A stretch of DNA of 64,000 nucleotides from Botryllus schlosseri (GCA_051294905.1 CM119378.1:12834001-12898000), one strand, 5' to 3'. Counted from the stretch's first letter, positions 6,410-20,283 are shown. Made by a program: numbers and translations. Notes: generated by a model from the letters alone, not told the origin.

Positions 6410-8243
6410 CTAGTTACTATTGCTTTTTATTTCATTCGATTGCCTGATGTGGTAGGATTTGCAAGATGCTTCGAACACAAGTGTTGTCTCCTGTAATTTG
6501 ATCATTCTCTTTTCAAGAAAGTCCTTTGACATCAAAATTTTGCCTGCCTCTGCGTTTGGAGCCAGGTGTCGACTTGCGTCGCTTATATAGCACGCAAGGG
6601 GATGCCGACAGCTTCTAGCCATATAATTATTGTCTTTACCCCAAGTTTGTCGACTGGTTAAGTATGCAATAATTTTGTTTCATTATTTCGACCTTGAATT
6701 TTCACTGCTATTGCCGGTCTGGTTCAGAATAATTTCTAGTTGCAATGCCATCATGAATTATGATATTGTGGTACTGGATGTCCCAACGCCAGTATTGACG
6801 GTTCGGTCTCCATGTCTGTAATGTAAGTAACAGTGGATAGACTCGCGCTGCCTGTTTATCTTGATCGTGGCTGAATCTAGAAATCAGTGATTTCCAGGAT
6901 TGTTATCTAATCTAAGCCATCAAAATGATGTGGTGGTGCTATTCTCTCTGAATTACGACTCGCCATTGCTTCTGTATAATGTTTCTGCGCTAATGACGTC
7001 TGATGTGCCTAACGAAGACTGTGACGTAACTGCGCATTTTATTTTTCTCGAAGAGTTCTATATTATATTGTTATAATATTTAGTTGTCCGTTGCCAGCTG
7101 AAATTATGCGCTTCTATTTTTTCAGTTTCATTCATGGCTCGTCAAAAATGTTTCATGTCGGGTAACTTTGAAAAGAATAAAATGAATGGGTTTGCTGCCA
7201 TCGCTATTCTGTCTCTAGTTAGCTAGCTAATGAACTGGATCAGTGATTATTAACGCAGTAACTGGATATATTTTTGAACTCTAAATTTGCAGTGTCTTTA
7301 GTGACTAAAGTAGCCGACACGGCCCACAGTCCGAATCTACTTTTGAAATTGCCTGCTTGAGTGCTTTTCAGCTATTTCCACTTGAAGTAGCTTTGACTTT
7401 CATAAGTCGCCACTTCTACTGCTGTCATAAGTCGCCACTTCTACTGCTGATCAAGTAAAAAAATTCTGAAGTAACAATCGTTGTGCTACAATCCTACGTT
7501 TTCACGGCTGTCCGAGCACGCCATACTTCGAATTAGGTTTATTTCTCGCACCTGTTCAGGAAGACTGAGGATTTGAAAACTGCATTGTTATACTCTTGCC
7601 ACCAATCAATCAATGTATCATGCAAAAATTAAGCCTTCACGGCATGCGATGTATCGGGTACAGTAAATTCGCGGGGAGGATTTAGTTGCGGGCTTGACAG
7701 TAATTTTGATTTTGGGTATATACAAACTTCATATCGAGCTCGACCGATTATAATTGATCGTTTGCTATAGAAGACTGGAAAAATTTTCTAAGCTCTTTTG
7801 CGGCATGCTTGCGACTGTTTTCTATCATTCGTTAGGTAACGGAGGAATGTAGGACATGTCTACTCGAATGAAAATTTGTTCGTCCAGAATTTGGAAGATT
7901 TCGAAAATGCTACATTATAAAGGCTCAATGTGCAGAACAAAACACCAGTGAGCGTTAAAGAGCTCACAGAAAAGTCAAATATTTTGCACAATCATTTGGA
8001 TGGCAGAATACCTTCCTAGAAGGTACCTTCTAGCATATTCACAGCTTCCTTTCTTCAACTGCTGTTACTTCCTCTGCTGCCAAGCCCTTTCAATTTCGTT
8101 GACTGTGGTTTCGGCTTGTGTGTGATATGTAGCCTTTTGAATACACCGAGTTGCTTTCTTCCTTGGTGTCGAGGACGACAAGATCTACAAATTGACAGAG
8201 CTTCATATTGGCCATCCCATGAATGGCAGCATGTTGGCCTATT
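6410..8243 (-). pseudogene. Decayed catalytic/C-terminal region of a hAT-like transposase, downstream of ORF copy 1
   Basis: A frameshifted IH-W-DG-like motif (attcatgggatggcc on - strand) lies just after the ORF stop. A C-terminal remnant HLAPNAEAGKILMSKDFLEKRMIKLQ (6410-6622) resembles the VxNDxAERGxxLxxxF motif. Many stops and frameshifts. A possible TAGGG-type terminus lies near 5965. Confidence 0.55.
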
Positions 8244-9149
8244 TTATGCAGACTTCTCTGAAATTTCACGAGATATTTCGAGACGGCGAGGCTTCGCTTT
8301 ACGGGGTCTCTTCGTTGAAGATCTTGACAGATCGAACATGGTTATATCTCCTTCACAAGCCTTAATAAATGCTCCCATCAGCATCGTTGCCTGATTGTCT
8401 GTTAGTCGTAATTGATCTAGAGCTTGGGAAACGTGGGCGTTTTTCATGATATTTTTAGGAGCCATGAGTTTAATGCGTTGTGTAGAAGAGCCAATAGCAA
8501 CAGCATCGTCAGAACCCACATTATAACCTTCTTTTGAAAATGATGATGAGGCAGAATCATATGTCATATCTTTATCAGCTATCCCGTCAATGGATACTGC
8601 TTTGTTCTTGATGTCTTTAGCCAGTATCTTGTCACCTCCCAACATCGTTGACTTGCGAGATCGGCGTTGATCTTCATAGAACTCAATGTCTTTGAGCTTT
8701 TTTTCCTGTGAAAGATTAATGTCATTTTCTATTATTGCAATCGCATCTTTTCTTCCAATATCCCATAACTTATCTAGAACATCCTGAAATTTTTTTCTCT
8801 CTCCCTTTGGATCACTCGCCCGTGCAGAACTCATCTTCAAATCAAGCCATTTTCGGTGCCGTTTTAAAAGTAATGTCACCGCATGTCCTTTAGGTATTGT
8901 CGCAATTCCCGCTGTTTTCCACACCGTCATCACATCATCCACCGCTGCATTCAATAGCTCACGTGTAGGGGTTGATTGACGACAATTTTCCTTCAGATGC
9001 AGCAAGTAACTCATTACGTCCCGTAAAGTAGGTAATTTAGAGTCACTGATATAATCGCAAGCATATCCGATCAAGAAATACTGCCGAGATTGCGATCTAT
9101 TTCGCGGCTGCTGCAAGTGCTCAATCTTTTGCCGTTTTGCCTCCGCCAT
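8244..9149 (-). CDS. Transposase-derived N-terminal-domain protein, copy 1 (301 aa)
   Basis: Intact ATG-to-stop ORF. Motifs FLIGY..I...KLPT..DV, V..VW..AGI.T, F...LD.LWDI...DA...I, DIEFYEDQR and LDQL.LTD.QA..L..A...A..GD....LS resemble N-termini of large invertebrate hAT-like transposases. Confidence 0.7.
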   Translation of the reverse strand: MAEAKRQKIEHLQQPRNRSQSRQYFLIGYACDYISDSKLPTLRDVMSYLLHLKENCRQSTPTRELLNAAVDDVMTVWKTAGIATIPKGHAVTLLLKRHRKWLDLKMSSARASDPKGERKKFQDVLDKLWDIGRKDAIAIIENDINLSQEKKLKDIEFYEDQRRSRKSTMLGGDKILAKDIKNKAVSIDGIADKDMTYDSASSSFSKEGYNVGSDDAVAIGSSTQRIKLMAPKNIMKNAHVSQALDQLRLTDNQATMLMGAFIKACEGDITMFDLSRSSTKRPRKAKPRRLEISREISEKSA

Positions 9150-9329
9150 CCCTGCAATATTGTCGGCTTGTCGCTATAACATTCGATAGCTACACAAGCA
9201 CAGTTGTTACAATAAGTCTTTAGCAAAGCAAATCAATCAAATCAGCCAGTCGCCACCGTAATGATTGAAGCTTAACTGACAGTAATGTACTCTCCGTTTT
9301 AGGCTACTCGCCCGAAATTTGATTTGTTC

Positions 9330-10024
9330 ATAGAGTAGTCAGAACTCGGAACAACTTCGTAATGTCTGTTGTAGGTTTAACGTAGTCTGAAAATAGTACA
9401 AGAGGCATTACAAAAAACCTATATACGCTGCACAGTACAGAACATAAATAATTACATGATAGTCGTGCAATTGCCAAGAAATCCGATTGCTGGTCTTGGT
9501 CAGGTAACAGAGGGGTATAAGGACATGTCACTTCGAATGGATTGAAATTTGTTTATTCAGCGTATTAAATGTGATGTGTGGACTGTGGGATGCTGATTTG
9601 GGGCTTGTCCAATATTTGGAAGATTTCAAAAATGCTACGTTGTAAAGGCTCATTCTGCATAAAATTAAACATCAATGAGCGTCAAATAGCTCACAGTAAA
9701 GTCACTAACATTTCACGCAAAGTATTTGAATGCCAGGACACCTTCCCTGAAGGTCTTCTAGCATGTTCAGAGCTCTCTTCCTCAGCTGTTGTTACTTGCT
9801 CTGCTGTCAAAAACCAATGCTGTTACAGCATGTCGTATATCCCACTTACAATTTGCTGCCGGTGGTTTTAGCTTGCGTGTGACCTGTAGCCTTTTGCATC
9901 TTTTGAATACACCAAGTAGCTTTCCTTCTTTGTGTTGAGGATGACAAGACAGAGTAATTGACATAGCTTCATATCGCATGAATGGCGGCATGTTGGACTA
10001 TTTTATGCAAACTTTTGCGAAATT
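9330..10024 (-). pseudogene. Frameshifted partial DDE core following ORF copy 2
   Basis: Remnants LSCHPQHKEGKLLGVFKR and KWDIRHAVTALVFDSRASNNS (9782-9991) resemble the transposase segments EKLLGVPK and W....V.AM.FDTTASNTG. Frames are broken. Confidence 0.65.
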
Positions 10025-10918
10025 TCATGGGATAATTTCAAGACGGCTAGGCTTTGTTTTCCTGGCTCGCTTCGTTGAAGGTTTTGACAGATCAAACATG
10101 GTTATATCTCCTTCACAAGCCTTAATAAATGCTCCCATCAGTATCGTTGCCTGGTTGTCTGTTAGTCCTAACTGATCTAAAGCTTGGGAAACATGGGCAT
10201 TTTTCATGATATTTTTAGGAGCCATCAGTTTAATGCGTTGGGTCGAGGTGGCAAAAGCAACAGTATCGCCAGTACTTAAATTATTACCTTCTTTCGACAA
10301 TGAAGAAGATGCTATTCTAGCAGAGTCATATGCCATATCTTTATCAGCTACCCCGTTAATGGATACAGTTTTCTTCTTGAGGTCTTTTGCCAGAATCTTA
10401 TCTCTTCCTGACATAGTTGACTTGCGAGATTGGCGTTGATCTTCATAGAATTCAATGTCTTCGAGCTTTTTTTCGTGTGAAAGATTAGTGTCATTTTCTA
10501 TTATTGCTATCGCATCTTTTCTTCCAATATCCCATAACTTATCCAAAACTTCCTGAAATTTTTTCCTCTTTCCCTTTGGATCACTTGCCCGTTTAGAATT
10601 CATCTTCAAATCAAGCCAATTTTGGTGCCGTTTTTGAAGTAATGCCACCGCATTTCCTTTAAGTATTGTCGCAATTCCCGCTGTTTTCCACACCGTCATC
10701 ACATCATCCACCACTGCATTCAATAGCTCACGTGTAGGGGTTGATTGACGACAATTTTTCTTCAGATGCAGCAAGTAACTCATTACGTCCCGTAAAGTAG
10801 GTAATTTAGAGTCACTGATATAATCGCAAGCATATCCGATCAAGAAATGCTGCTGAGATTGAGATCTATTTCGGGGCTGCTGCAAGTGCTCAATCTTTTG
10901 CCGTTTTGCCTCCGCCAT
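10025..10918 (-). CDS. Transposase-derived N-terminal-domain protein, copy 2 (297 aa, chimeric)
   Basis: Intact ORF paralogous to copies 1 and 3. Start codon is 1769 bp from that of copy 1. Confidence 0.7.
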   Translation of the reverse strand: MAEAKRQKIEHLQQPRNRSQSQQHFLIGYACDYISDSKLPTLRDVMSYLLHLKKNCRQSTPTRELLNAVVDDVMTVWKTAGIATILKGNAVALLQKRHQNWLDLKMNSKRASDPKGKRKKFQEVLDKLWDIGRKDAIAIIENDTNLSHEKKLEDIEFYEDQRQSRKSTMSGRDKILAKDLKKKTVSINGVADKDMAYDSARIASSSLSKEGNNLSTGDTVAFATSTQRIKLMAPKNIMKNAHVSQALDQLGLTDNQATILMGAFIKACEGDITMFDLSKPSTKRARKTKPSRLEIIP

Positions 10919-11096
10919 CCCTGCAATATTGTCGCCTTGTCGCTATAACATTCGATAGTTACACAAGCACAGTTGTTACAATAAAGTCTTTAGCAAAGCA
11001 AATCAATCAAATCAGCCAATCGCCACCGTAATGATTGAAGCTTAACTGACAGTAACGTACGCTCTGTTTTAGGCTACTCGCCCGAAATTTGATTTG

Positions 11097-11801
11097 TTCA
11101 TAGAGGAGTCAGAACTCGGAACAACTTCGTAATGTCTGTTGTATGTTTACCGTAATCTGAAAATAGTACAACAGGCATTACAAAAAACCTATATACGCTG
11201 CACAGTACAGAACATAAATAATTACATAATAGTCGTGCAATTGCCAAGATATCCGATCGCTGGTCTTGGTCAATGTTCAGGTAACAGAGGGGCATAAGAT
11301 CATGTCCATTTGAATGGATTAAAATTTGTTTATTCAGCATATTAAATGTGATGTGTGGACTGTGGGATGCTGATTTGGGGCTTGTCCAATATTTGGAAGA
11401 TTTCGAAAATGCTACGTTGTAAAGGCTTATTCTGCATAAAAATAACATCAATGAGCGTCAAATAGCTCACAGAAAAGTCAATAACATTTCACACAAAGTA
11501 TTTGAATGCCAGGACACCTTCCCTGAAGGCCTTCTAGCATCTTCAGAGCTCTCTTCCTCAGCTGCTGTTACTTGCTCTGCTGTCAAAATCCAATGTTGTT
11601 CCAGCATGTCGTATATCCCACTTACAATTATGCTGCCCATGGTTTTAGCTAATGTGTGACCTGTAGCCTTTTGCATCTTTTGAATACACCAAGTAGCTTT
11701 CCTTCTTTGTGTTGAGGATGACAAGACAGAACAAATGACATAGCTTCATATCGCATGAATGGCAGCATGTTTGACTATTTTATACAAACTTCTCCGAGAT
11801 T
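11097..11801 (-). pseudogene. Frameshifted partial DDE core following ORF copy 3
   Basis: Near-duplicate of 9330-10024, differing by non-triplet indels (for example a 7-nt indel near 11273-11280). Confidence 0.65.
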
Positions 11802-12680
11802 TCATGAGATAATTTCAAGACGGCGAGGCTTTGTTTTCCTGGCTCGCTTCGTTGAAGGTTTTGACAGATCAAACATGGTTACATCTCCTTCACAAGCCTT
11901 AATAAATGCTCCCATCAGTATCGTTGCCTGGTTGTCTGTTAGTCCCAACTGATCTAGAGCTTGGGAAACATGGGCATTTTTCATGATATTTTTAGGAGCC
12001 ATCAGTTTAATGCGCTGGGTCGAGTTGACAAGAGCAACAGCATCTTCCGAACTCAAATTATTACTTTGTTTCGACGATGAAGAAGATTCTGTTCTAGCAG
12101 AGTCATATGCCATATCTTTATGAGCTACCCCGTTAATGGATACAGTGAGGTCTTTTACCAGAATCTTGTCTCTTCCTGACATAGTTGACTTGCGAGATCG
12201 GCGTTGATCTTCATAGAATTCAATGTCTTCGAGCTTTTTTTCGTGTGAAAGATTACTATCATTTTCTATTATTGATATCGCATCACTTCTTCCAATATCC
12301 CATAGCTTGGCCAAATCTTCCTGAAATTTCGTTCTCTTTCCCTTTGGATCACTTGCCCGTTTAGAACACTTCTTCAAACTAAGCCACTTCTCATAAGATT
12401 TATTGAGTAATCTCACCGCATGGCTTTTCTGTATTGTCGCAATTCCCGCTATTTTCCACACCGTCAGTACATCATCCACCACGGCATTCAATAGCTCATG
12501 CGTAGGGGTTGATTGACGACAATTTTCCTTGAGATGCAGCAAGTAACTCATTACATCCCGCAAAGTAGGTAATCTGGAGTCACTGATATAATCGCAAGCA
12601 TATCCGACCAAGTAATGCTGATATTGAGTTGATGGCTGCCGCAAGTGATGCTCAATCTTTTGTCGCTTTGCCTCCGCCAT
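11802..12680 (-). CDS. Transposase-derived N-terminal-domain protein, copy 3 (292 aa)
   Basis: Intact ORF. Start codon is 1762 bp from that of copy 2. Indels relative to copies 1 and 2 are multiples of 3. Confidence 0.7.
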   Translation of the reverse strand: MAEAKRQKIEHHLRQPSTQYQHYLVGYACDYISDSRLPTLRDVMSYLLHLKENCRQSTPTHELLNAVVDDVLTVWKIAGIATIQKSHAVRLLNKSYEKWLSLKKCSKRASDPKGKRTKFQEDLAKLWDIGRSDAISIIENDSNLSHEKKLEDIEFYEDQRRSRKSTMSGRDKILVKDLTVSINGVAHKDMAYDSARTESSSSSKQSNNLSSEDAVALVNSTQRIKLMAPKNIMKNAHVSQALDQLGLTDNQATILMGAFIKACEGDVTMFDLSKPSTKRARKTKPRRLEIIS

Positions 12681-13104
12681 GTCTGCAATATTGTCGCTAA
12701 AGCGTTATAGTTACAGAATCACAGGTGCTATAGTAAACTCTTTTAGCGAATAACTATACTATCAAATTGAATTTGAACTTGAATACTGAAGTTCTGCACG
12801 TCCTTTCCAATCACGTCCCTCTAGCAAAGCGAAATCAGCCCGTCGCCGCCGTAATGATTGAAGCGTAACTGAATAATCTATCAAGCACATCCGTGTTTTC
12901 GTCACCGAGCTTTCGTGCTTGCCCTTGCCCCGTAGCCCGCCAACTTGATTTGTGGTCGGTGGGCCAAAGAATGTACAGGGGCTAGGCCAGAATGGTTTCC
13001 AACCACCGGTGCCGGTCCGCGACGAATTTTCTGCTGCCTGCTATAGTTGTCTGAAACCTTCGATGTTCATAAGTGCCTAAAGAACAGGCGCCGAATAGTC
13101 GTAT

Positions 13105-13144
13105 CATAGCAATTTACAACGTAGCTACGTTGTAAATTGCTATG
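13105..13144. repeat. Perfect 40-bp palindrome flanked by 8-bp direct repeats
   Basis: catagcaatttacaacgtag|ctacgttgtaaattgctatg, with gtcgtatc at 13098-13105 and 13145-13152. Confidence 0.95.
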
Positions 13145-13960
13145 GTCGTATCCTTGCAATCTCAGCCCCACAGTACAAATGCCACGTGGGCAACCCTTGG
13201 TACGTCTACGCGTGGGCAATTTCAATCTGTTTTGACTATGTAGCGGACGAAAGGTTACGAGATATTAACATGCAACAAAGTATTCAATAACTTAAACCGA
13301 GGTGGGTGTCTGTACTCTAGACCAGCGGTTCTCAACCTTTTTCACCTCGCGGACCAGTAAAATTTCGAAAAATACTTGACGAACCGGTGGACTTTCAAAA
13401 ATTGAAATCAACCGAAAAATTGAAGTATGCTGCCGTTTTTTGCAAGTATATGGTGCTAGAGAGTGACATTTTAAAGGGTTTGATCGAAATTCATGATAGC
13501 ATCCATGTGATTTTACGGTAGTGAGTCTGCTGAGTCGAAGTAAAATTGCCTTGCCCAGATACACGTGCTACCGTCGAGAGTCTTTTACAGTCTTTCGCAC
13601 CGTAGGTCATGGATGTAATCGACCACGCCAACTGGAATAATATTCTTCTCTTCGATAATATCGGGAGAAGAAGTGCTTCGGAGTCGAACCAAGCACCTCG
13701 TCGTGCAACCTTGCTCATTGCCCACAACACCAGACGTAGGCTACTCTTGCTACTACAGATATAATGCGCCGCACGAAAACACCTGACTACAGCTATACCT
13801 GGCCAGTGGCCATCCACAAATCCGGGGTCGCAAAGCCACTTCGTCAGCCAACCCCACCCCACCCCCCAAAAAAAAACGTTAGTCTTATCCCTCCTACAGT
13901 TAGATGGATTTTTTCACCAGTAGGCTACTTCTGAACACATCCATTTTACTCCGTGTATGC

Positions 13961-17702: not shown

Positions 17703-19796
17703 TGTAACATCCTGGGAATTGATTAATGTAATGGATCAGTGATTGCATTGTTGGTCACAGTTGATTGACTAGTGTGCGCTTTCTTCGCGGAAGGTGGTAG
17801 AATGTTCTTCGCGTTTCTGGCTGCACGTGTTATTGAGTGCGCGGTCGTTTAGTAGGAAGCTTAGGAATGCTTGTGAACTGGGTATTTGTACTTGCAATGT
17901 AGTGTAGTGCCTGTATATCTCTGTGAGGTACTGATTGGAGTATTTGGTTGTATTAAGTGGCTTGGTATTAAATTGGTAACTTGTAAATACTCCTGGGTGT
18001 ACTTGATGGCATGCTGGTGGTAGCGGGTCGCCGACGAGAGGGTTTCTGAACCGAAGAACAACGACGTCCCTGTTAGGTCGACAGCGCCGTATCAGGGTCG
18101 CTACAATTTGGCGAGCACGCCAGGACCTCTCTTTGATGGTGACGGTTGGAAAGATATGGTTTGGAAAGCATCCGGATCAAAGCAGTTATGCTGTGGGGAT
18201 GATAACCAGTATCTTTCGGAAAAGCTACGAGTAGGCATCAAGGAACACAATGAACGGATGGACAGGATGCAGCAAGAGTTTGAAAGGAGCAAGGAGAGGG
18301 AGCGACAGTTAGGGTTAACTGTTCTCCCTGGATTAGATGCTATCCTTGGTGGGCTGCTATCGGTGAGAACGAGTCTTCGGAGACGGAAGACTGGAAGTGT
18401 TGGCTCAGGTTCTCTGAAGAGCTCGCGTGAAGAAATTGCTGCAGTGCCTGGTGTTACCAAATCTGTCGGGTTGCCACGGAAGCCGGGTGGCGGAAAGCGA
18501 GGTGTCGTTCGCGGAAAAGACAGATTCGGGGAAGCCGGTGTTTGTAAACGCAAACAGGAATGTGCTGCTGATAGAGTCGTGAAAGGCAACGGGTCGAGTT
18601 TGCCTGGGACCAAGCAGTATGGAGGGAACTGTCGCGGTGACGATGACAGATGGAAGGCTGATGCTGCTGCTGTTACGGCTGTCTCGACGGTACGATCAGG
18701 GCTGATCGTGGAAGGCAACGGGTCGTGGTTGCCTGGGGCTAAGCAGCACGGAGAAGTCTGTCGCGGGGACGATGACAGAGGAAAAGCCGATACTGCTGCT
18801 GCCGTTGATCCTGTTTGGACGGTGCAGTCGGTGCTGGTCGTGGAAGGCAATGGGCTGAGTTTGCCTGTGACTGAGCAGCAGGGAGAAGTCGAACGTGGCG
18901 ATGTGAAAAGTGAAAAAGCTGACACTGCTGCTGTTAGGACGGTTTCGACTGTAAGCTCGGTATTGATCGTGGAAAGCGATGTATCGTGTTTGCCTGGGAT
19001 CAAGCAGCAGGAATGTGATTGTCTCGTTGGCATAAGCGAGGCTGCGTGTGACAGAGGTGTCGAACTGACGGGGTATGAGCGTGATGATGCTCATTGGTGT
19101 CGGCCTGGAACCTGCGGATGCTTCCTGATGGAGGGTCGGAGGCTGACTGTAATTGGTGGAGTGACGTGACCGGATTGTGGAAGTCGGGATGCACTGTGAT
19201 GACGACTTCGGAATGGACGTTATGGTCAACGATATTGCATTTGATTTAGCGGAACGAAGTGTAATAGGTCCTTTCTTGTGTGTTGTTGAGCTATTTACGT
19301 TAGCTGGTACTTGATGCATGGTTGGTTGCTTTGTAGGTCTTATTGTGTGATTGAGATTTTTAGGGAAAATCCAATCAAGAAAGGGGAGGGTAGTGTAACA
19401 TCCTGGGAATTGATTAATGTAATGGATCAGTGATTGCATTGTTGGTCACAGTTGATTGACTAGTGTGCGCTTTCTTCGCGGAAGGTGGTAGAATGTTCTT
19501 CGCGTTTCTGGCTGCACGTGTTATTGAGTGCGCGGTCGTTTAGTAGGAAGCTTAGGAATGCTTGTGAACTGGGTATTTGTACTTGCAATGTAGTGTAGTG
19601 CCTGTATATCTCTGTGAGGTACTGATTGGAGTATTTGGTTGTATTAAGTGGCTTGGTATTAAATTGGTAACTTGTAAATACTCCTGGGTGTACTTGATGG
19701 CATGCTGGTGGTAGCGGGTCGCCGACGAGAGGGTTTCTGAACCGAAGAACAACGACGTCCCTGTTAGGTCGACAGCGCCGTATCAGGGTCGCTACA
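17703..19796 (+). mobile_element. Non-autonomous LTR retrotransposon (Gypsy-like termini, TRIM-like size)
   Basis: 403-bp LTRs at 17703-18105 and 19394-19796, identical by eye, with TG...CA ends. 4-bp TSD ctat. PBS TGGCGAGCACGCCAGGA (18109-18125) resembles the complement of the tRNA-Arg 3' end. PPT aagaaaggggaggg at 19377-19390. No RT, integrase or recognisable gag in the 1288-bp interior. Confidence 0.92.
18156..19169 (+). CDS. LTR-element internal ORF (337 aa from first ATG): coiled-coil segment plus about 3.5 x 43/44-aa repeats
   Basis: Open frame 18108-19169 with in-frame repeats starting at 18579, 18708, 18840 and 18969 (periods 129, 132 and 129 nt). Confidence 0.5.
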   Translation: MVWKASGSKQLCCGDDNQYLSEKLRVGIKEHNERMDRMQQEFERSKERERQLGLTVLPGLDAILGGLLSVRTSLRRRKTGSVGSGSLKSSREEIAAVPGVTKSVGLPRKPGGGKRGVVRGKDRFGEAGVCKRKQECAADRVVKGNGSSLPGTKQYGGNCRGDDDRWKADAAAVTAVSTVRSGLIVEGNGSWLPGAKQHGEVCRGDDDRGKADTAAAVDPVWTVQSVLVVEGNGLSLPVTEQQGEVERGDVKSEKADTAAVRTVSTVSSVLIVESDVSCLPGIKQQECDCLVGISEAACDRGVELTGYERDDAHWCRPGTCGCFLMEGRRLTVIGGVT

Positions 19797-20283
19797 CTAT
19801 CTTCTTTACTTTCATTCAGTGTGCATGCCTCCTCTTTACATCGCCTAGGCCAAGGTGGGTGTCTGATTCCATAGACAACTTCTAGTCGCTTCGACATCTT
19901 CCTTTCTTTTCATTGTATCGCATTTTTGTGGTGTATTGAAATGATAAAATTGCTAATAAACCAATGATGATGATGAGGTGTTCAGCAAGAGAATTATTCA
20001 ATTGAGTAGCTTCAGCTGCCATAAAATACTCTACCTTAAGGGTGGTGGCATACAAAATTGGTCCCAATTGAGGACTCAGAGAGGCTACTTCGACGTTAAA
20101 GCCACTCCGATCTAAATCCTTGTAGCTTAGATTAAAAAGGCACATTATTCGTAGCATATGACATGACCTTATAAGGAATAATCTTCTCCATAACTTTGTG
20201 CCTTTCTGGGCATTCTGCACAAATACTTGACAGACATAGCCTACTATAAAAAAGAGTCAGCCGGGGCCTACGACAAGTTATCG

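Follow-up and report, generated by a model that had tools for sequence, protein, structure and literature searches.

The 64-kb window that we analyzed (64,000 nucleotides [nt] of one strand of Botryllus schlosseri, GCA_051294905.1 CM119378.1:12834001-12898000) carries, between positions 8244 and 12680, a tandem array of three open reading frames (ORFs) that correspond to the N-terminal region of a hAT-like transposase and stop before its catalytic core. A preliminary description, made from the sequence alone, had noticed three ORFs in tandem units of about 1.77 kb, each with an intact ATG and with indels in triplets, and the ORF coordinates, their spacing and their alignment bore this arrangement out. 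We sought close relatives by a word-indexed search of 5.8 billion proteins and found P0001 and P0002 alone, both of them read-through paralogues 63 to 70% identical to the ORFs. P0001 (413 amino acids [aa], 63% identical) passes the point at which the ORFs stop and continues into '...RLEISQDILEKFAENRPQHVAIHWDGKLTEDRLGNRYEAL...VFDTTASNSG'. The three ORFs are as follows.

8244-9149, minus strand: copy 1 ORF, 301 aa; ATG start; ends at the ancestral TAA (8244-8246), which is a Glu codon in the read-through relative P0001.
10025-10918, minus strand: copy 2 ORF, 297 aa; ATG start; recombinant, with a copy 1-like 5' part and a copy 3-like 3' part.
11802-12680, minus strand: copy 3 ORF, 292 aa; ATG start; the whole pre-catalytic N-terminal region of the transposase.

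The units lie head to tail, their starts being 1769 and 1768 nt apart. When unit 2 was compared with the window by Blast, the unit limits fell at about 10919-12692, 9150-10930 and 7882-9161, and no fourth unit was found in the 64 kb. The other two copies share 85% and 79% protein identity with copy 1. Length differences between the proteins are in frame only: copy 1 lacks the residues RIA, copy 3 lacks KKK, and the N terminus of copy 3 differs by +1/-3 aa. The copy 3 ORF ends in a TGA that was created by a 1-nt insertion; copy 2 carries the same insertion, and it makes both copies stop 11 codons short of the old TAA. Only the last 17 nt or so before the ORF ATG are homologous to the related element; the flank farther 5' is not. 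The DNA between the units comprises the following segments.

9150-9606, minus strand: inter-unit segment upstream of the copy 1 ATG; AATAAA at 9552-9557; no counterpart downstream of unit 1.
10919-11375, minus strand: inter-unit segment upstream of the copy 2 ATG; AATAAA at 11329-11334.
12832-12872, minus strand: remnant of the upstream segment ahead of copy 3, the sole clear one; 93% identical to 9239-9279.

The two complete segments are 94 to 99% identical to each other. Both AATAAA sites had been pointed out before and are present, and the AATAAA stretch is gone from unit 1. A search for inverted repeats around the array, as candidates for terminal inverted repeats, found nothing credible. 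The array is a fixed single-site locus of head-to-tail units without element termini.

Beyond the stop of every ORF, the DNA still aligns by tblastn to the catalytic part of P0001 ('...EKFAENRPQHVAIHWDGKLTEDRLGNRYEAL...FDTTASNSG'), and each unit retains a recognizable remnant of the Asp-Asp-Glu (DDE) core.

11420-11801, minus strand: catalytic-core remnant of unit 3; HWDG, FDTTASN and CRHH regions; shared TAA at 11780-11782 and shared frameshifts.
9607-10024, minus strand: catalytic-core remnant of unit 2; shared TAA at 10003-10005; tblastn with P0001 extends to aa 403.
7882-8243, minus strand: catalytic-core remnant of unit 1; 'WDG' codons kept at 8211-8219; 9- and 31-nt deletions relative to units 2 and 3.

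The blastn homology of the unit 1 remnant stops at 7882; by eye it resumes past a deletion and reaches about 7830. That the core DNA next to the ORFs is broken, as originally observed, was evident from the TAA, the frameshifts and the 1-, 2- and 7-nt indels found on comparison with P0001. Nucleotide alignment with the P0001 contig identified lesions that are common to all three units: a GAA-to-TAA change in the Glu codon of 'FAENRP', a 2-nt deletion a few codons farther on and a deletion of the 'KLTEDRLGN' stretch in the HWDG region, which removed 28 nt from unit 1 and 35 nt from each of the other two. Other small length differences from the P0001 contig (2, 1 and 12 nt, in all units) may be changes on either side. 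The remnants also bear 1-, 2-, 7- and 31-nt indels. Because every unit carries this TAA, the 2-nt and HWDG-region deletions and the other frameshifts, the truncation preceded the duplication; the ancestral unit had already lost its core, and the units have diverged from one another only since then. The catalytic core was destroyed by a nonsense mutation and several frameshifts before the tandem duplication. As a separate observation, the P0001 contig (L001:1380-1510) has, in our reading, a frameshift of its own just after 'FDTTASNSGWKKG', the 'LLGKKVFYHACRHHVYEL' motif going on in another frame, so that the nearest read-through relative is itself broken or misassembled.

The three copies had been taken as three independent survivals of an open frame. 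This view had to be given up, because unit 2 is a mosaic. We compared the units by sliding identity and by counts of informative sites, that is, sites at which units 1 and 3 differ. Upstream (5') of about position 10490, unit 2 agrees with unit 1 at 54 of 68 such sites; downstream (3') of it, remnant included, 104 of 124 sites side with unit 3.

10490-10600 (approximate), no strand: crossover zone inside unit 2, where its affinity shifts from unit 1 to unit 3.

Together with the near-identical spacers, this mosaic is the pattern expected of an unequal crossover between the downstream and the upstream member of an older two-unit array. Between the two old lineages, represented by units 1 and 3, the Kimura two-parameter distance is 0.16 over the ORF and 0.22 over the remnant. 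The array consists of two old lineages and a later hybrid middle unit, not of three independent copies, and from the counts of private sites we estimate that the hybrid formed at roughly 40% of the array's age.

The preliminary description had suggested that the frame was retained by selection and had named the ratio of nonsynonymous to synonymous substitution rates (omega) as the check. Between copies 1 and 3, omega was 0.33 to 0.39 by three counting methods and 0.33 by pairwise codon maximum likelihood (likelihood ratio test [LRT] statistic, 28.2). On a star tree with P0001 as the outgroup, omega was 0.30 and 0.36 on the copy 1 and copy 3 branches (joint value, 0.33), and forcing both branches to an omega of 1 cost 15 log-likelihood units (LRT statistic, 30.0; p 4e-8). 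A four-taxon codon model that was segment aware, so as to respect the mosaic of unit 2, and that was computed by eigendecomposition gave a single omega of 0.385 for all copy branches (p 3e-7), with no significant heterogeneity among them (p 0.105). We next scored the conservation of each alignment column on distant family members only. Amino acid differences between copies 1 and 3 fell in 33%, 20% and 13% of the low-, mid- and high-conservation columns, respectively (Mann-Whitney p 2e-4). When random substitution was simulated at the observed or at the spacer-derived density, both old lineages stayed free of stops in only 3e-3 to 3e-4 of the trials.

The decayed core provided an internal control for these values. 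Between units 1 and 3, the ORF has indels of 3, 9, 9 and 9 nt in 866 sites, together with one 1-nt indel at its extreme 3' end, whereas the remnant has indels of 7, 9, 31, 1, 2, 3, 1 and 2 nt in only 373 sites; at the rate of the remnant, a simple arithmetic estimate would predict about 14 frame-breaking indels in the ORF. Likewise, the differences between copies 1 and 3 are distributed over the three codon positions as 42/29/63 in the ORF (p 0.0014), compared to 15/18/8 in the remnant read in its ancestral frame (p 0.17). These data support the view that the ORF was kept under purifying selection after the truncation, while the adjacent core decayed freely.

The contrast between ORF and remnant bears directly on the simplest alternative, namely that the array is a neutral relic: a dead fragment that was duplicated by unequal exchange and whose frames have so far escaped damage or have been patched by ectopic conversion, with no product that matters. 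Tandem dimers of transposable elements that expand by unequal exchange are indeed common (PMC5932611), the youngest branches of the array have an omega of 0.6 to 0.7 that does not differ from 1, the expression evidence presented below is weak and not ORF specific, and the approximately 100 related copies in the genome could serve as conversion donors. However, neutrality leaves the overall omega of 0.33 to 0.39 (p ~1e-7), the avoidance of family-conserved columns and the sharp difference in indel type and codon-position pattern to chance. Sliding identity for conversion tracts from P0001-like copies found none that was evident, and in no window was one copy markedly nearer the outgroup, as a tract would make it. 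The P0001 type is only about 75% identical in DNA, and dispersed relatives at that overall identity would be a poor substrate for conversion. Moreover, conversion should sometimes have mended the remnant, yet its old lesions are still shared. We therefore consider a neutral relic unlikely.

To place the parent of the array, we ran an exhaustive phmmer search with P0001, which returned 2433 cluster representatives, 85 of them at an E value of 1e-30 or better. Full-length members of this family have about 750 residues (~735 to 790 aa) and share the motif series HWDGK...FDTTASN...CRHH...NDxAER. The only name that any source gives to a member is 'Cc8K15.2-like protein', from lobster, and a literature search on 'Cc8K15.2' gave no result. 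Pfam assigned no family to six full-length members at an E value of 0.01 or better, the hAT dimerization domain (PF05699) and a BED/zinc finger being undetected, and the three ORFs, searched at E values up to 1, gave nothing but a subthreshold match to COMM_HN. A profile of 38 full-length members had only chance matches among the PDB sequences (E 0.5 or worse), and close relatives were sought in metagenome contigs without success. The lack of a Pfam family in members and ORFs alike points to a divergent, unmodelled hAT-like lineage.

The superfamily could nevertheless be assigned by structure, so that of the family assignment called for at the outset the superfamily stands and a Pfam family does not. 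The model of the full-length member P0004 (mean predicted local distance difference test score [pLDDT], 87) found the Hermes transposase in the top eleven places of a Foldseek search (best E 3.9e-06). VIA-align superposed it on Hermes with Z scores of 16 to 18 over about 360 residues (Z 18.1 over 367; residues 272-754 of the model, 133-609 of Hermes), while the next-best group of DDE enzymes scored a Z of 10 to 11 and no other DDE transposase or integrase exceeded 11.6. The model shows an RNase H-like DDE core with a large, all-alpha insertion domain similar to that of Hermes. In an alignment of 38 full-length members, D385 (FDTTASN) and E719 (NDxAER) do not vary, and D318 (in HWDGK) hardly does; the model places D318 on beta-1, D385 just after beta-4 and E719 in a C-terminal helix. 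The parent is therefore a divergent hAT-superfamily transposase, and the Asp of HWDG is, as suggested earlier, the first catalytic residue. Aligned with the full-length members, the ORFs span residues 1 to about 300 and end about 12 to 25 residues before HWDG, so that they comprise exactly the region that precedes the catalytic fold.

Proteins of similar length are found elsewhere in the family. We considered Atlas look-alikes (~295 aa) and library relatives (~290 aa) as stand-alone N-terminal proteins and rejected them, as all of them end within about 20 residues of one alignment column. A Tara Oceans contig (L002:913-4143) encodes a family member in five exons, with a CAG/GTCAGT donor after exon 1 and the other four exons downstream; its protein is recorded on at least 24 contigs. 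The common end column and the exon 1 donor of this contig indicate that these look-alikes, and with them many family proteins of about 290 aa in public collections, are exon 1 read-through calls of full-length elements. The first intron of distant relatives falls some 40 residues before the truncation point of the array, and one may speculate that retention of this intron would give a comparable N-terminal product. Because exon 1 ends so near the truncation point, N-terminal-only products may perhaps be an old regulatory device of the family that was captured by the host.

What the retained protein might do was approached by modelling copy 2 (pLDDT 82). The model consists of a confident helical domain (residues ~40-205), a disordered Ser-rich and acidic linker (~207-235), two short helices (241-267) and the beginning of the helix that runs into beta-1. 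Compared with the PDB, this N-terminal model had no significant match (best Foldseek E, 3.4; best Z in a wide VIA-align comparison, 5.0). Within the noise, residues 233-297 resembled three-helix DNA-binding modules (homeodomain and the N-terminal helix-turn-helix [HTH] of Mos1 and ISCth4; Z 4-5), and residues 38-110 resembled winged-helix or trihelix modules. These hints, weak as they are (Z 4-5 for HTH and winged-helix modules), would suit a domesticated family with a host function apart from transposon control, for example, as a DNA- or chromatin-binding factor acting through its N-terminal helical domains in the way of other hAT-derived host genes. Such a family would leave the same signs of selection, and the flank beyond the 17 nt that precede the ATG, not being that of the related element, would fit a non-transposon promoter. 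Against this, the array has no deep orthology, a sibling taxon at 98 to 99% identity being the only one to share it; its copy number changed recently, its most recent branches hint at relaxed constraint, and, with the parent family alive and transcribed in the same genome, an interaction with that family is the simpler reading. We regard an unrelated host function as distinctly unlikely.

The parent family became apparent when we mapped two RNA-labelled and two DNA-labelled runs on positions 7500-13400, the 'RNA?' labels being guesses. In DNA of the same species, copy-specific ORF contigs had a depth of 15 to 28, the summed spacer bins fit two local spacer copies, and the remnants were at single-copy depth. 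In contrast to the copy-specific contigs, the ORF blocks that are conserved in the family reached a summed depth of 600 to 1800, which corresponds to roughly on the order of 100 related dispersed copies. The loose ends of paralogous contigs and of RNA reads encode 'PQRRTRSKS' and 'ARETNRLEIS', which are of the P0001 type, indicating that the dispersed family is P0001-like and transcribed. The counter-case envisaged in the preliminary description, many dispersed copies with the same truncation, was not seen, as spacers, remnants and copy-specific contigs were all at single-copy depth. The truncated type is confined to one locus, and this speaks against a mobile deletion derivative. The same locus occurs under one other, sibling organism label at 98 to 99% identity, spacers included, which means either that the array is older than that very recent split or that the two labels stand for the same species or population; the next proteins, P0001 and P0002, are paralogues.

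Transcripts of the array were harder to tell from those of its relatives. Words of copy 2 occur in RNA-labelled assemblies of five studies. In one RNA-labelled run, the ORFs, the spacers and the downstream flank had word depths of 20 to 250 compared to 0 to 9 upstream of copy 3, a drop that looks like a transcription boundary. Eight RNA reads over the single-copy remnant of unit 3 imply that some transcription is local. The minus-strand mRNA that the preliminary description had proposed to look for did not emerge: reads were sparse, came from both strands and were unspliced. A 'ttgcag' just before each ATG was considered as a splice acceptor and rejected, because no joint was found and one RNA-labelled contig crosses it unspliced. 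The data weakly suggest low to moderate transcription of the array, without a defined mRNA in the mapped runs. Unspliced coverage of ORFs, spacers and downstream flank, with reads in both orientations, at a locus homologous to an abundant transcribed family, is also what one would see if the function lay at the RNA level, the fragment cluster yielding small RNAs against the parent family in the manner of a piRNA cluster and its coding capacity being incidental. An RNA-level function, however, leaves the omega below 1, the in-frame-only indels and the avoidance of conserved residues unexplained, and we consider it very improbable.

Our preferred interpretation, to which we assign a probability of about 0.55, is a selected single-locus array of N-terminal-only derivatives of a hAT-like transposase that would act in trans on related elements. 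In the sequence of events that the data show, a nonsense mutation and frameshifts killed the core of one copy of a hAT-superfamily transposon, the truncated fragment was duplicated in tandem, and an unequal crossover between diverged units later produced the hybrid middle unit. Throughout, purifying selection maintained a frame of 290 to 300 aa that encodes a family-specific helical domain, the acidic, Ser-rich linker, a small module of helices and the beginning of the helix to the RNase H fold. The ORFs would be translated into N-terminal-only derivatives, and these would act in trans on the approximately 100 related dispersed elements, either by occupying the element ends or by forming inactive hetero-oligomers with the full-length transposase, in a dominant-negative manner like that of KP or the P-neogenes. 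The array is thus a believable candidate for a regulator or inhibitor that derives from a transposase and was retained by the host.

Several observations weigh against an array that acts in trans. On the post-crossover branches alone, omega is 0.6 to 0.7 and indistinguishable from 1 (p 0.13-0.32), as neutrality would have it, and although it does not differ from that of the older branches (p 0.63), constraint on the youngest branches may have relaxed. Ectopic conversion from selected paralogues could mimic a low omega, and the outgroup is a single sequence. Orthology was seen in one very close relative only, and the array ORFs are absent from the matches of the protein homology search, so that they are seemingly not among the called proteins of the collection. 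As for expression, the RNA-labelled runs contained no splice joints over the array, covered the spacers and downstream flank as well and left the strand unclear, and 92% of the mapped reads of a certified raw RNA-seq run fit only partly, in both orientations, and derive from paralogues. Finally, the modelled N-terminal fold has no significant structural match, so that DNA binding by the ORF proteins is conjectural, and a nuclear localization function is likewise conjectural. A stronger version of the proposal, in which the array is a live transposase decoy locus whose amplified N-terminal-only isoform restrains the transcribed ~100-copy family in the same genome, is possible but, on present evidence, doubtful.

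Some further features were noted around the array. Upstream of copy 3 lies a perfect palindrome of 20 + 20 nt (13105-13144). In the bin beside it, 13213-13400, genomic word depth sums to about 45,000, compared to about 20 for single-copy sequence, and this bin is abundant in the RNA runs and in the sibling organism as well. We take this to be a very high-copy, MITE (miniature inverted-repeat transposable element)-like repeat. Within the spacers, a stretch around 11384 (~11243-11439, and 9470-9666 in the other spacer) has a genomic depth of 640 to 1670 beside the AATAAA site; it could be a conserved piece of the family core or an unrelated repeat. Downstream of the array, RNA-labelled and sibling contigs skip 96 or 132 nt within 7588-7721, with TA..TA ends, which looks like a presence/absence polymorphism of a small insertion and not like an intron. 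Farther downstream, positions 7400-7449 form an exact 25-nt tandem duplication (2.0 copies, 100% identical). Elsewhere in the window, the region 18001-20000 has a G+C content of up to 0.50 and a GC skew of +0.30, with long, overlapping low-complexity ORFs on both strands at 18101-19439.

Of the known systems, Hermes (PDB 2BW3, 4D1Q and 6DWZ) is the structural relative of the parent: full-length family members share its RNase H core with the all-alpha insertion domain. However, identity is only about 12%, the family lacks the BED finger, its hAT dimerization domain is undetected by Pfam, and it has about 270 additional N-terminal helical residues without a match in the PDB; the ORFs of the window stop before the Hermes-like core. 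The locus thereby draws attention to a large, unmodelled hAT-like family with an N-terminal helical region that has no structural match. The ZBED family and DAYSLEEPER are likewise transposase derived, immobile and under purifying selection. Both are conserved across deep orthologues, whereas orthology of the array is known from no more than a sibling taxon, and its ORFs retain the pre-catalytic region alone.

KP, the 66-kDa P-element repressors and truncated transposases of Ac, a hAT element, are trans-dominant inhibitors. Like the array ORFs, they keep the pre-catalytic N terminus, have lost the DDE core and coexist with full-length relatives in the same genome. They are, however, mobile deletion derivatives, products of alternative splicing or engineered constructs, while here we find a fixed, selected and amplified locus for which inhibition is only proposed. 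To our knowledge, such loci of truncated transposases are rarely documented, the textbook case being the P-neogene cluster of the Drosophila obscura group.

This cluster, and in particular that of Drosophila guanche, is the closest precedent for the array. Its units reportedly lack the last exon and are said to encode a 66-kDa repressor-like protein. The D. guanche P-element homologues form a large tandem array of elements that miss about 100 nt of terminal sequence (PMC5932611); the original work on this array (Miller et al. 1992, PNAS 89:4018) is cited in PMC5932611 and PMC3212892. In both cases, an immobile single-locus tandem array is made of units without termini and without the C-terminal catalytic part, and the N-terminal frame is open. 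The differences are that the fly array belongs to the P/THAP9 superfamily and the present one has a hAT/Hermes fold, that there are only three units here, that truncation came about by nonsense mutation and frameshifts here and by exon loss there, and that the present array is known from sequence and resides in a marine animal instead of a fly. For further study, the locus offers a decayed core as an internal neutral control, a recombinant copy that helps dating and an abundant, transcribed parent family. Should the decoy interpretation be true, the array would be the hAT counterpart, in a marine animal, of the P-element 66-kDa repressor and P-neogene story. A second case in another superfamily and another animal lineage would show that element control, or new DNA-binding genes, can be reached recurrently by capture of a transposase's noncatalytic half.

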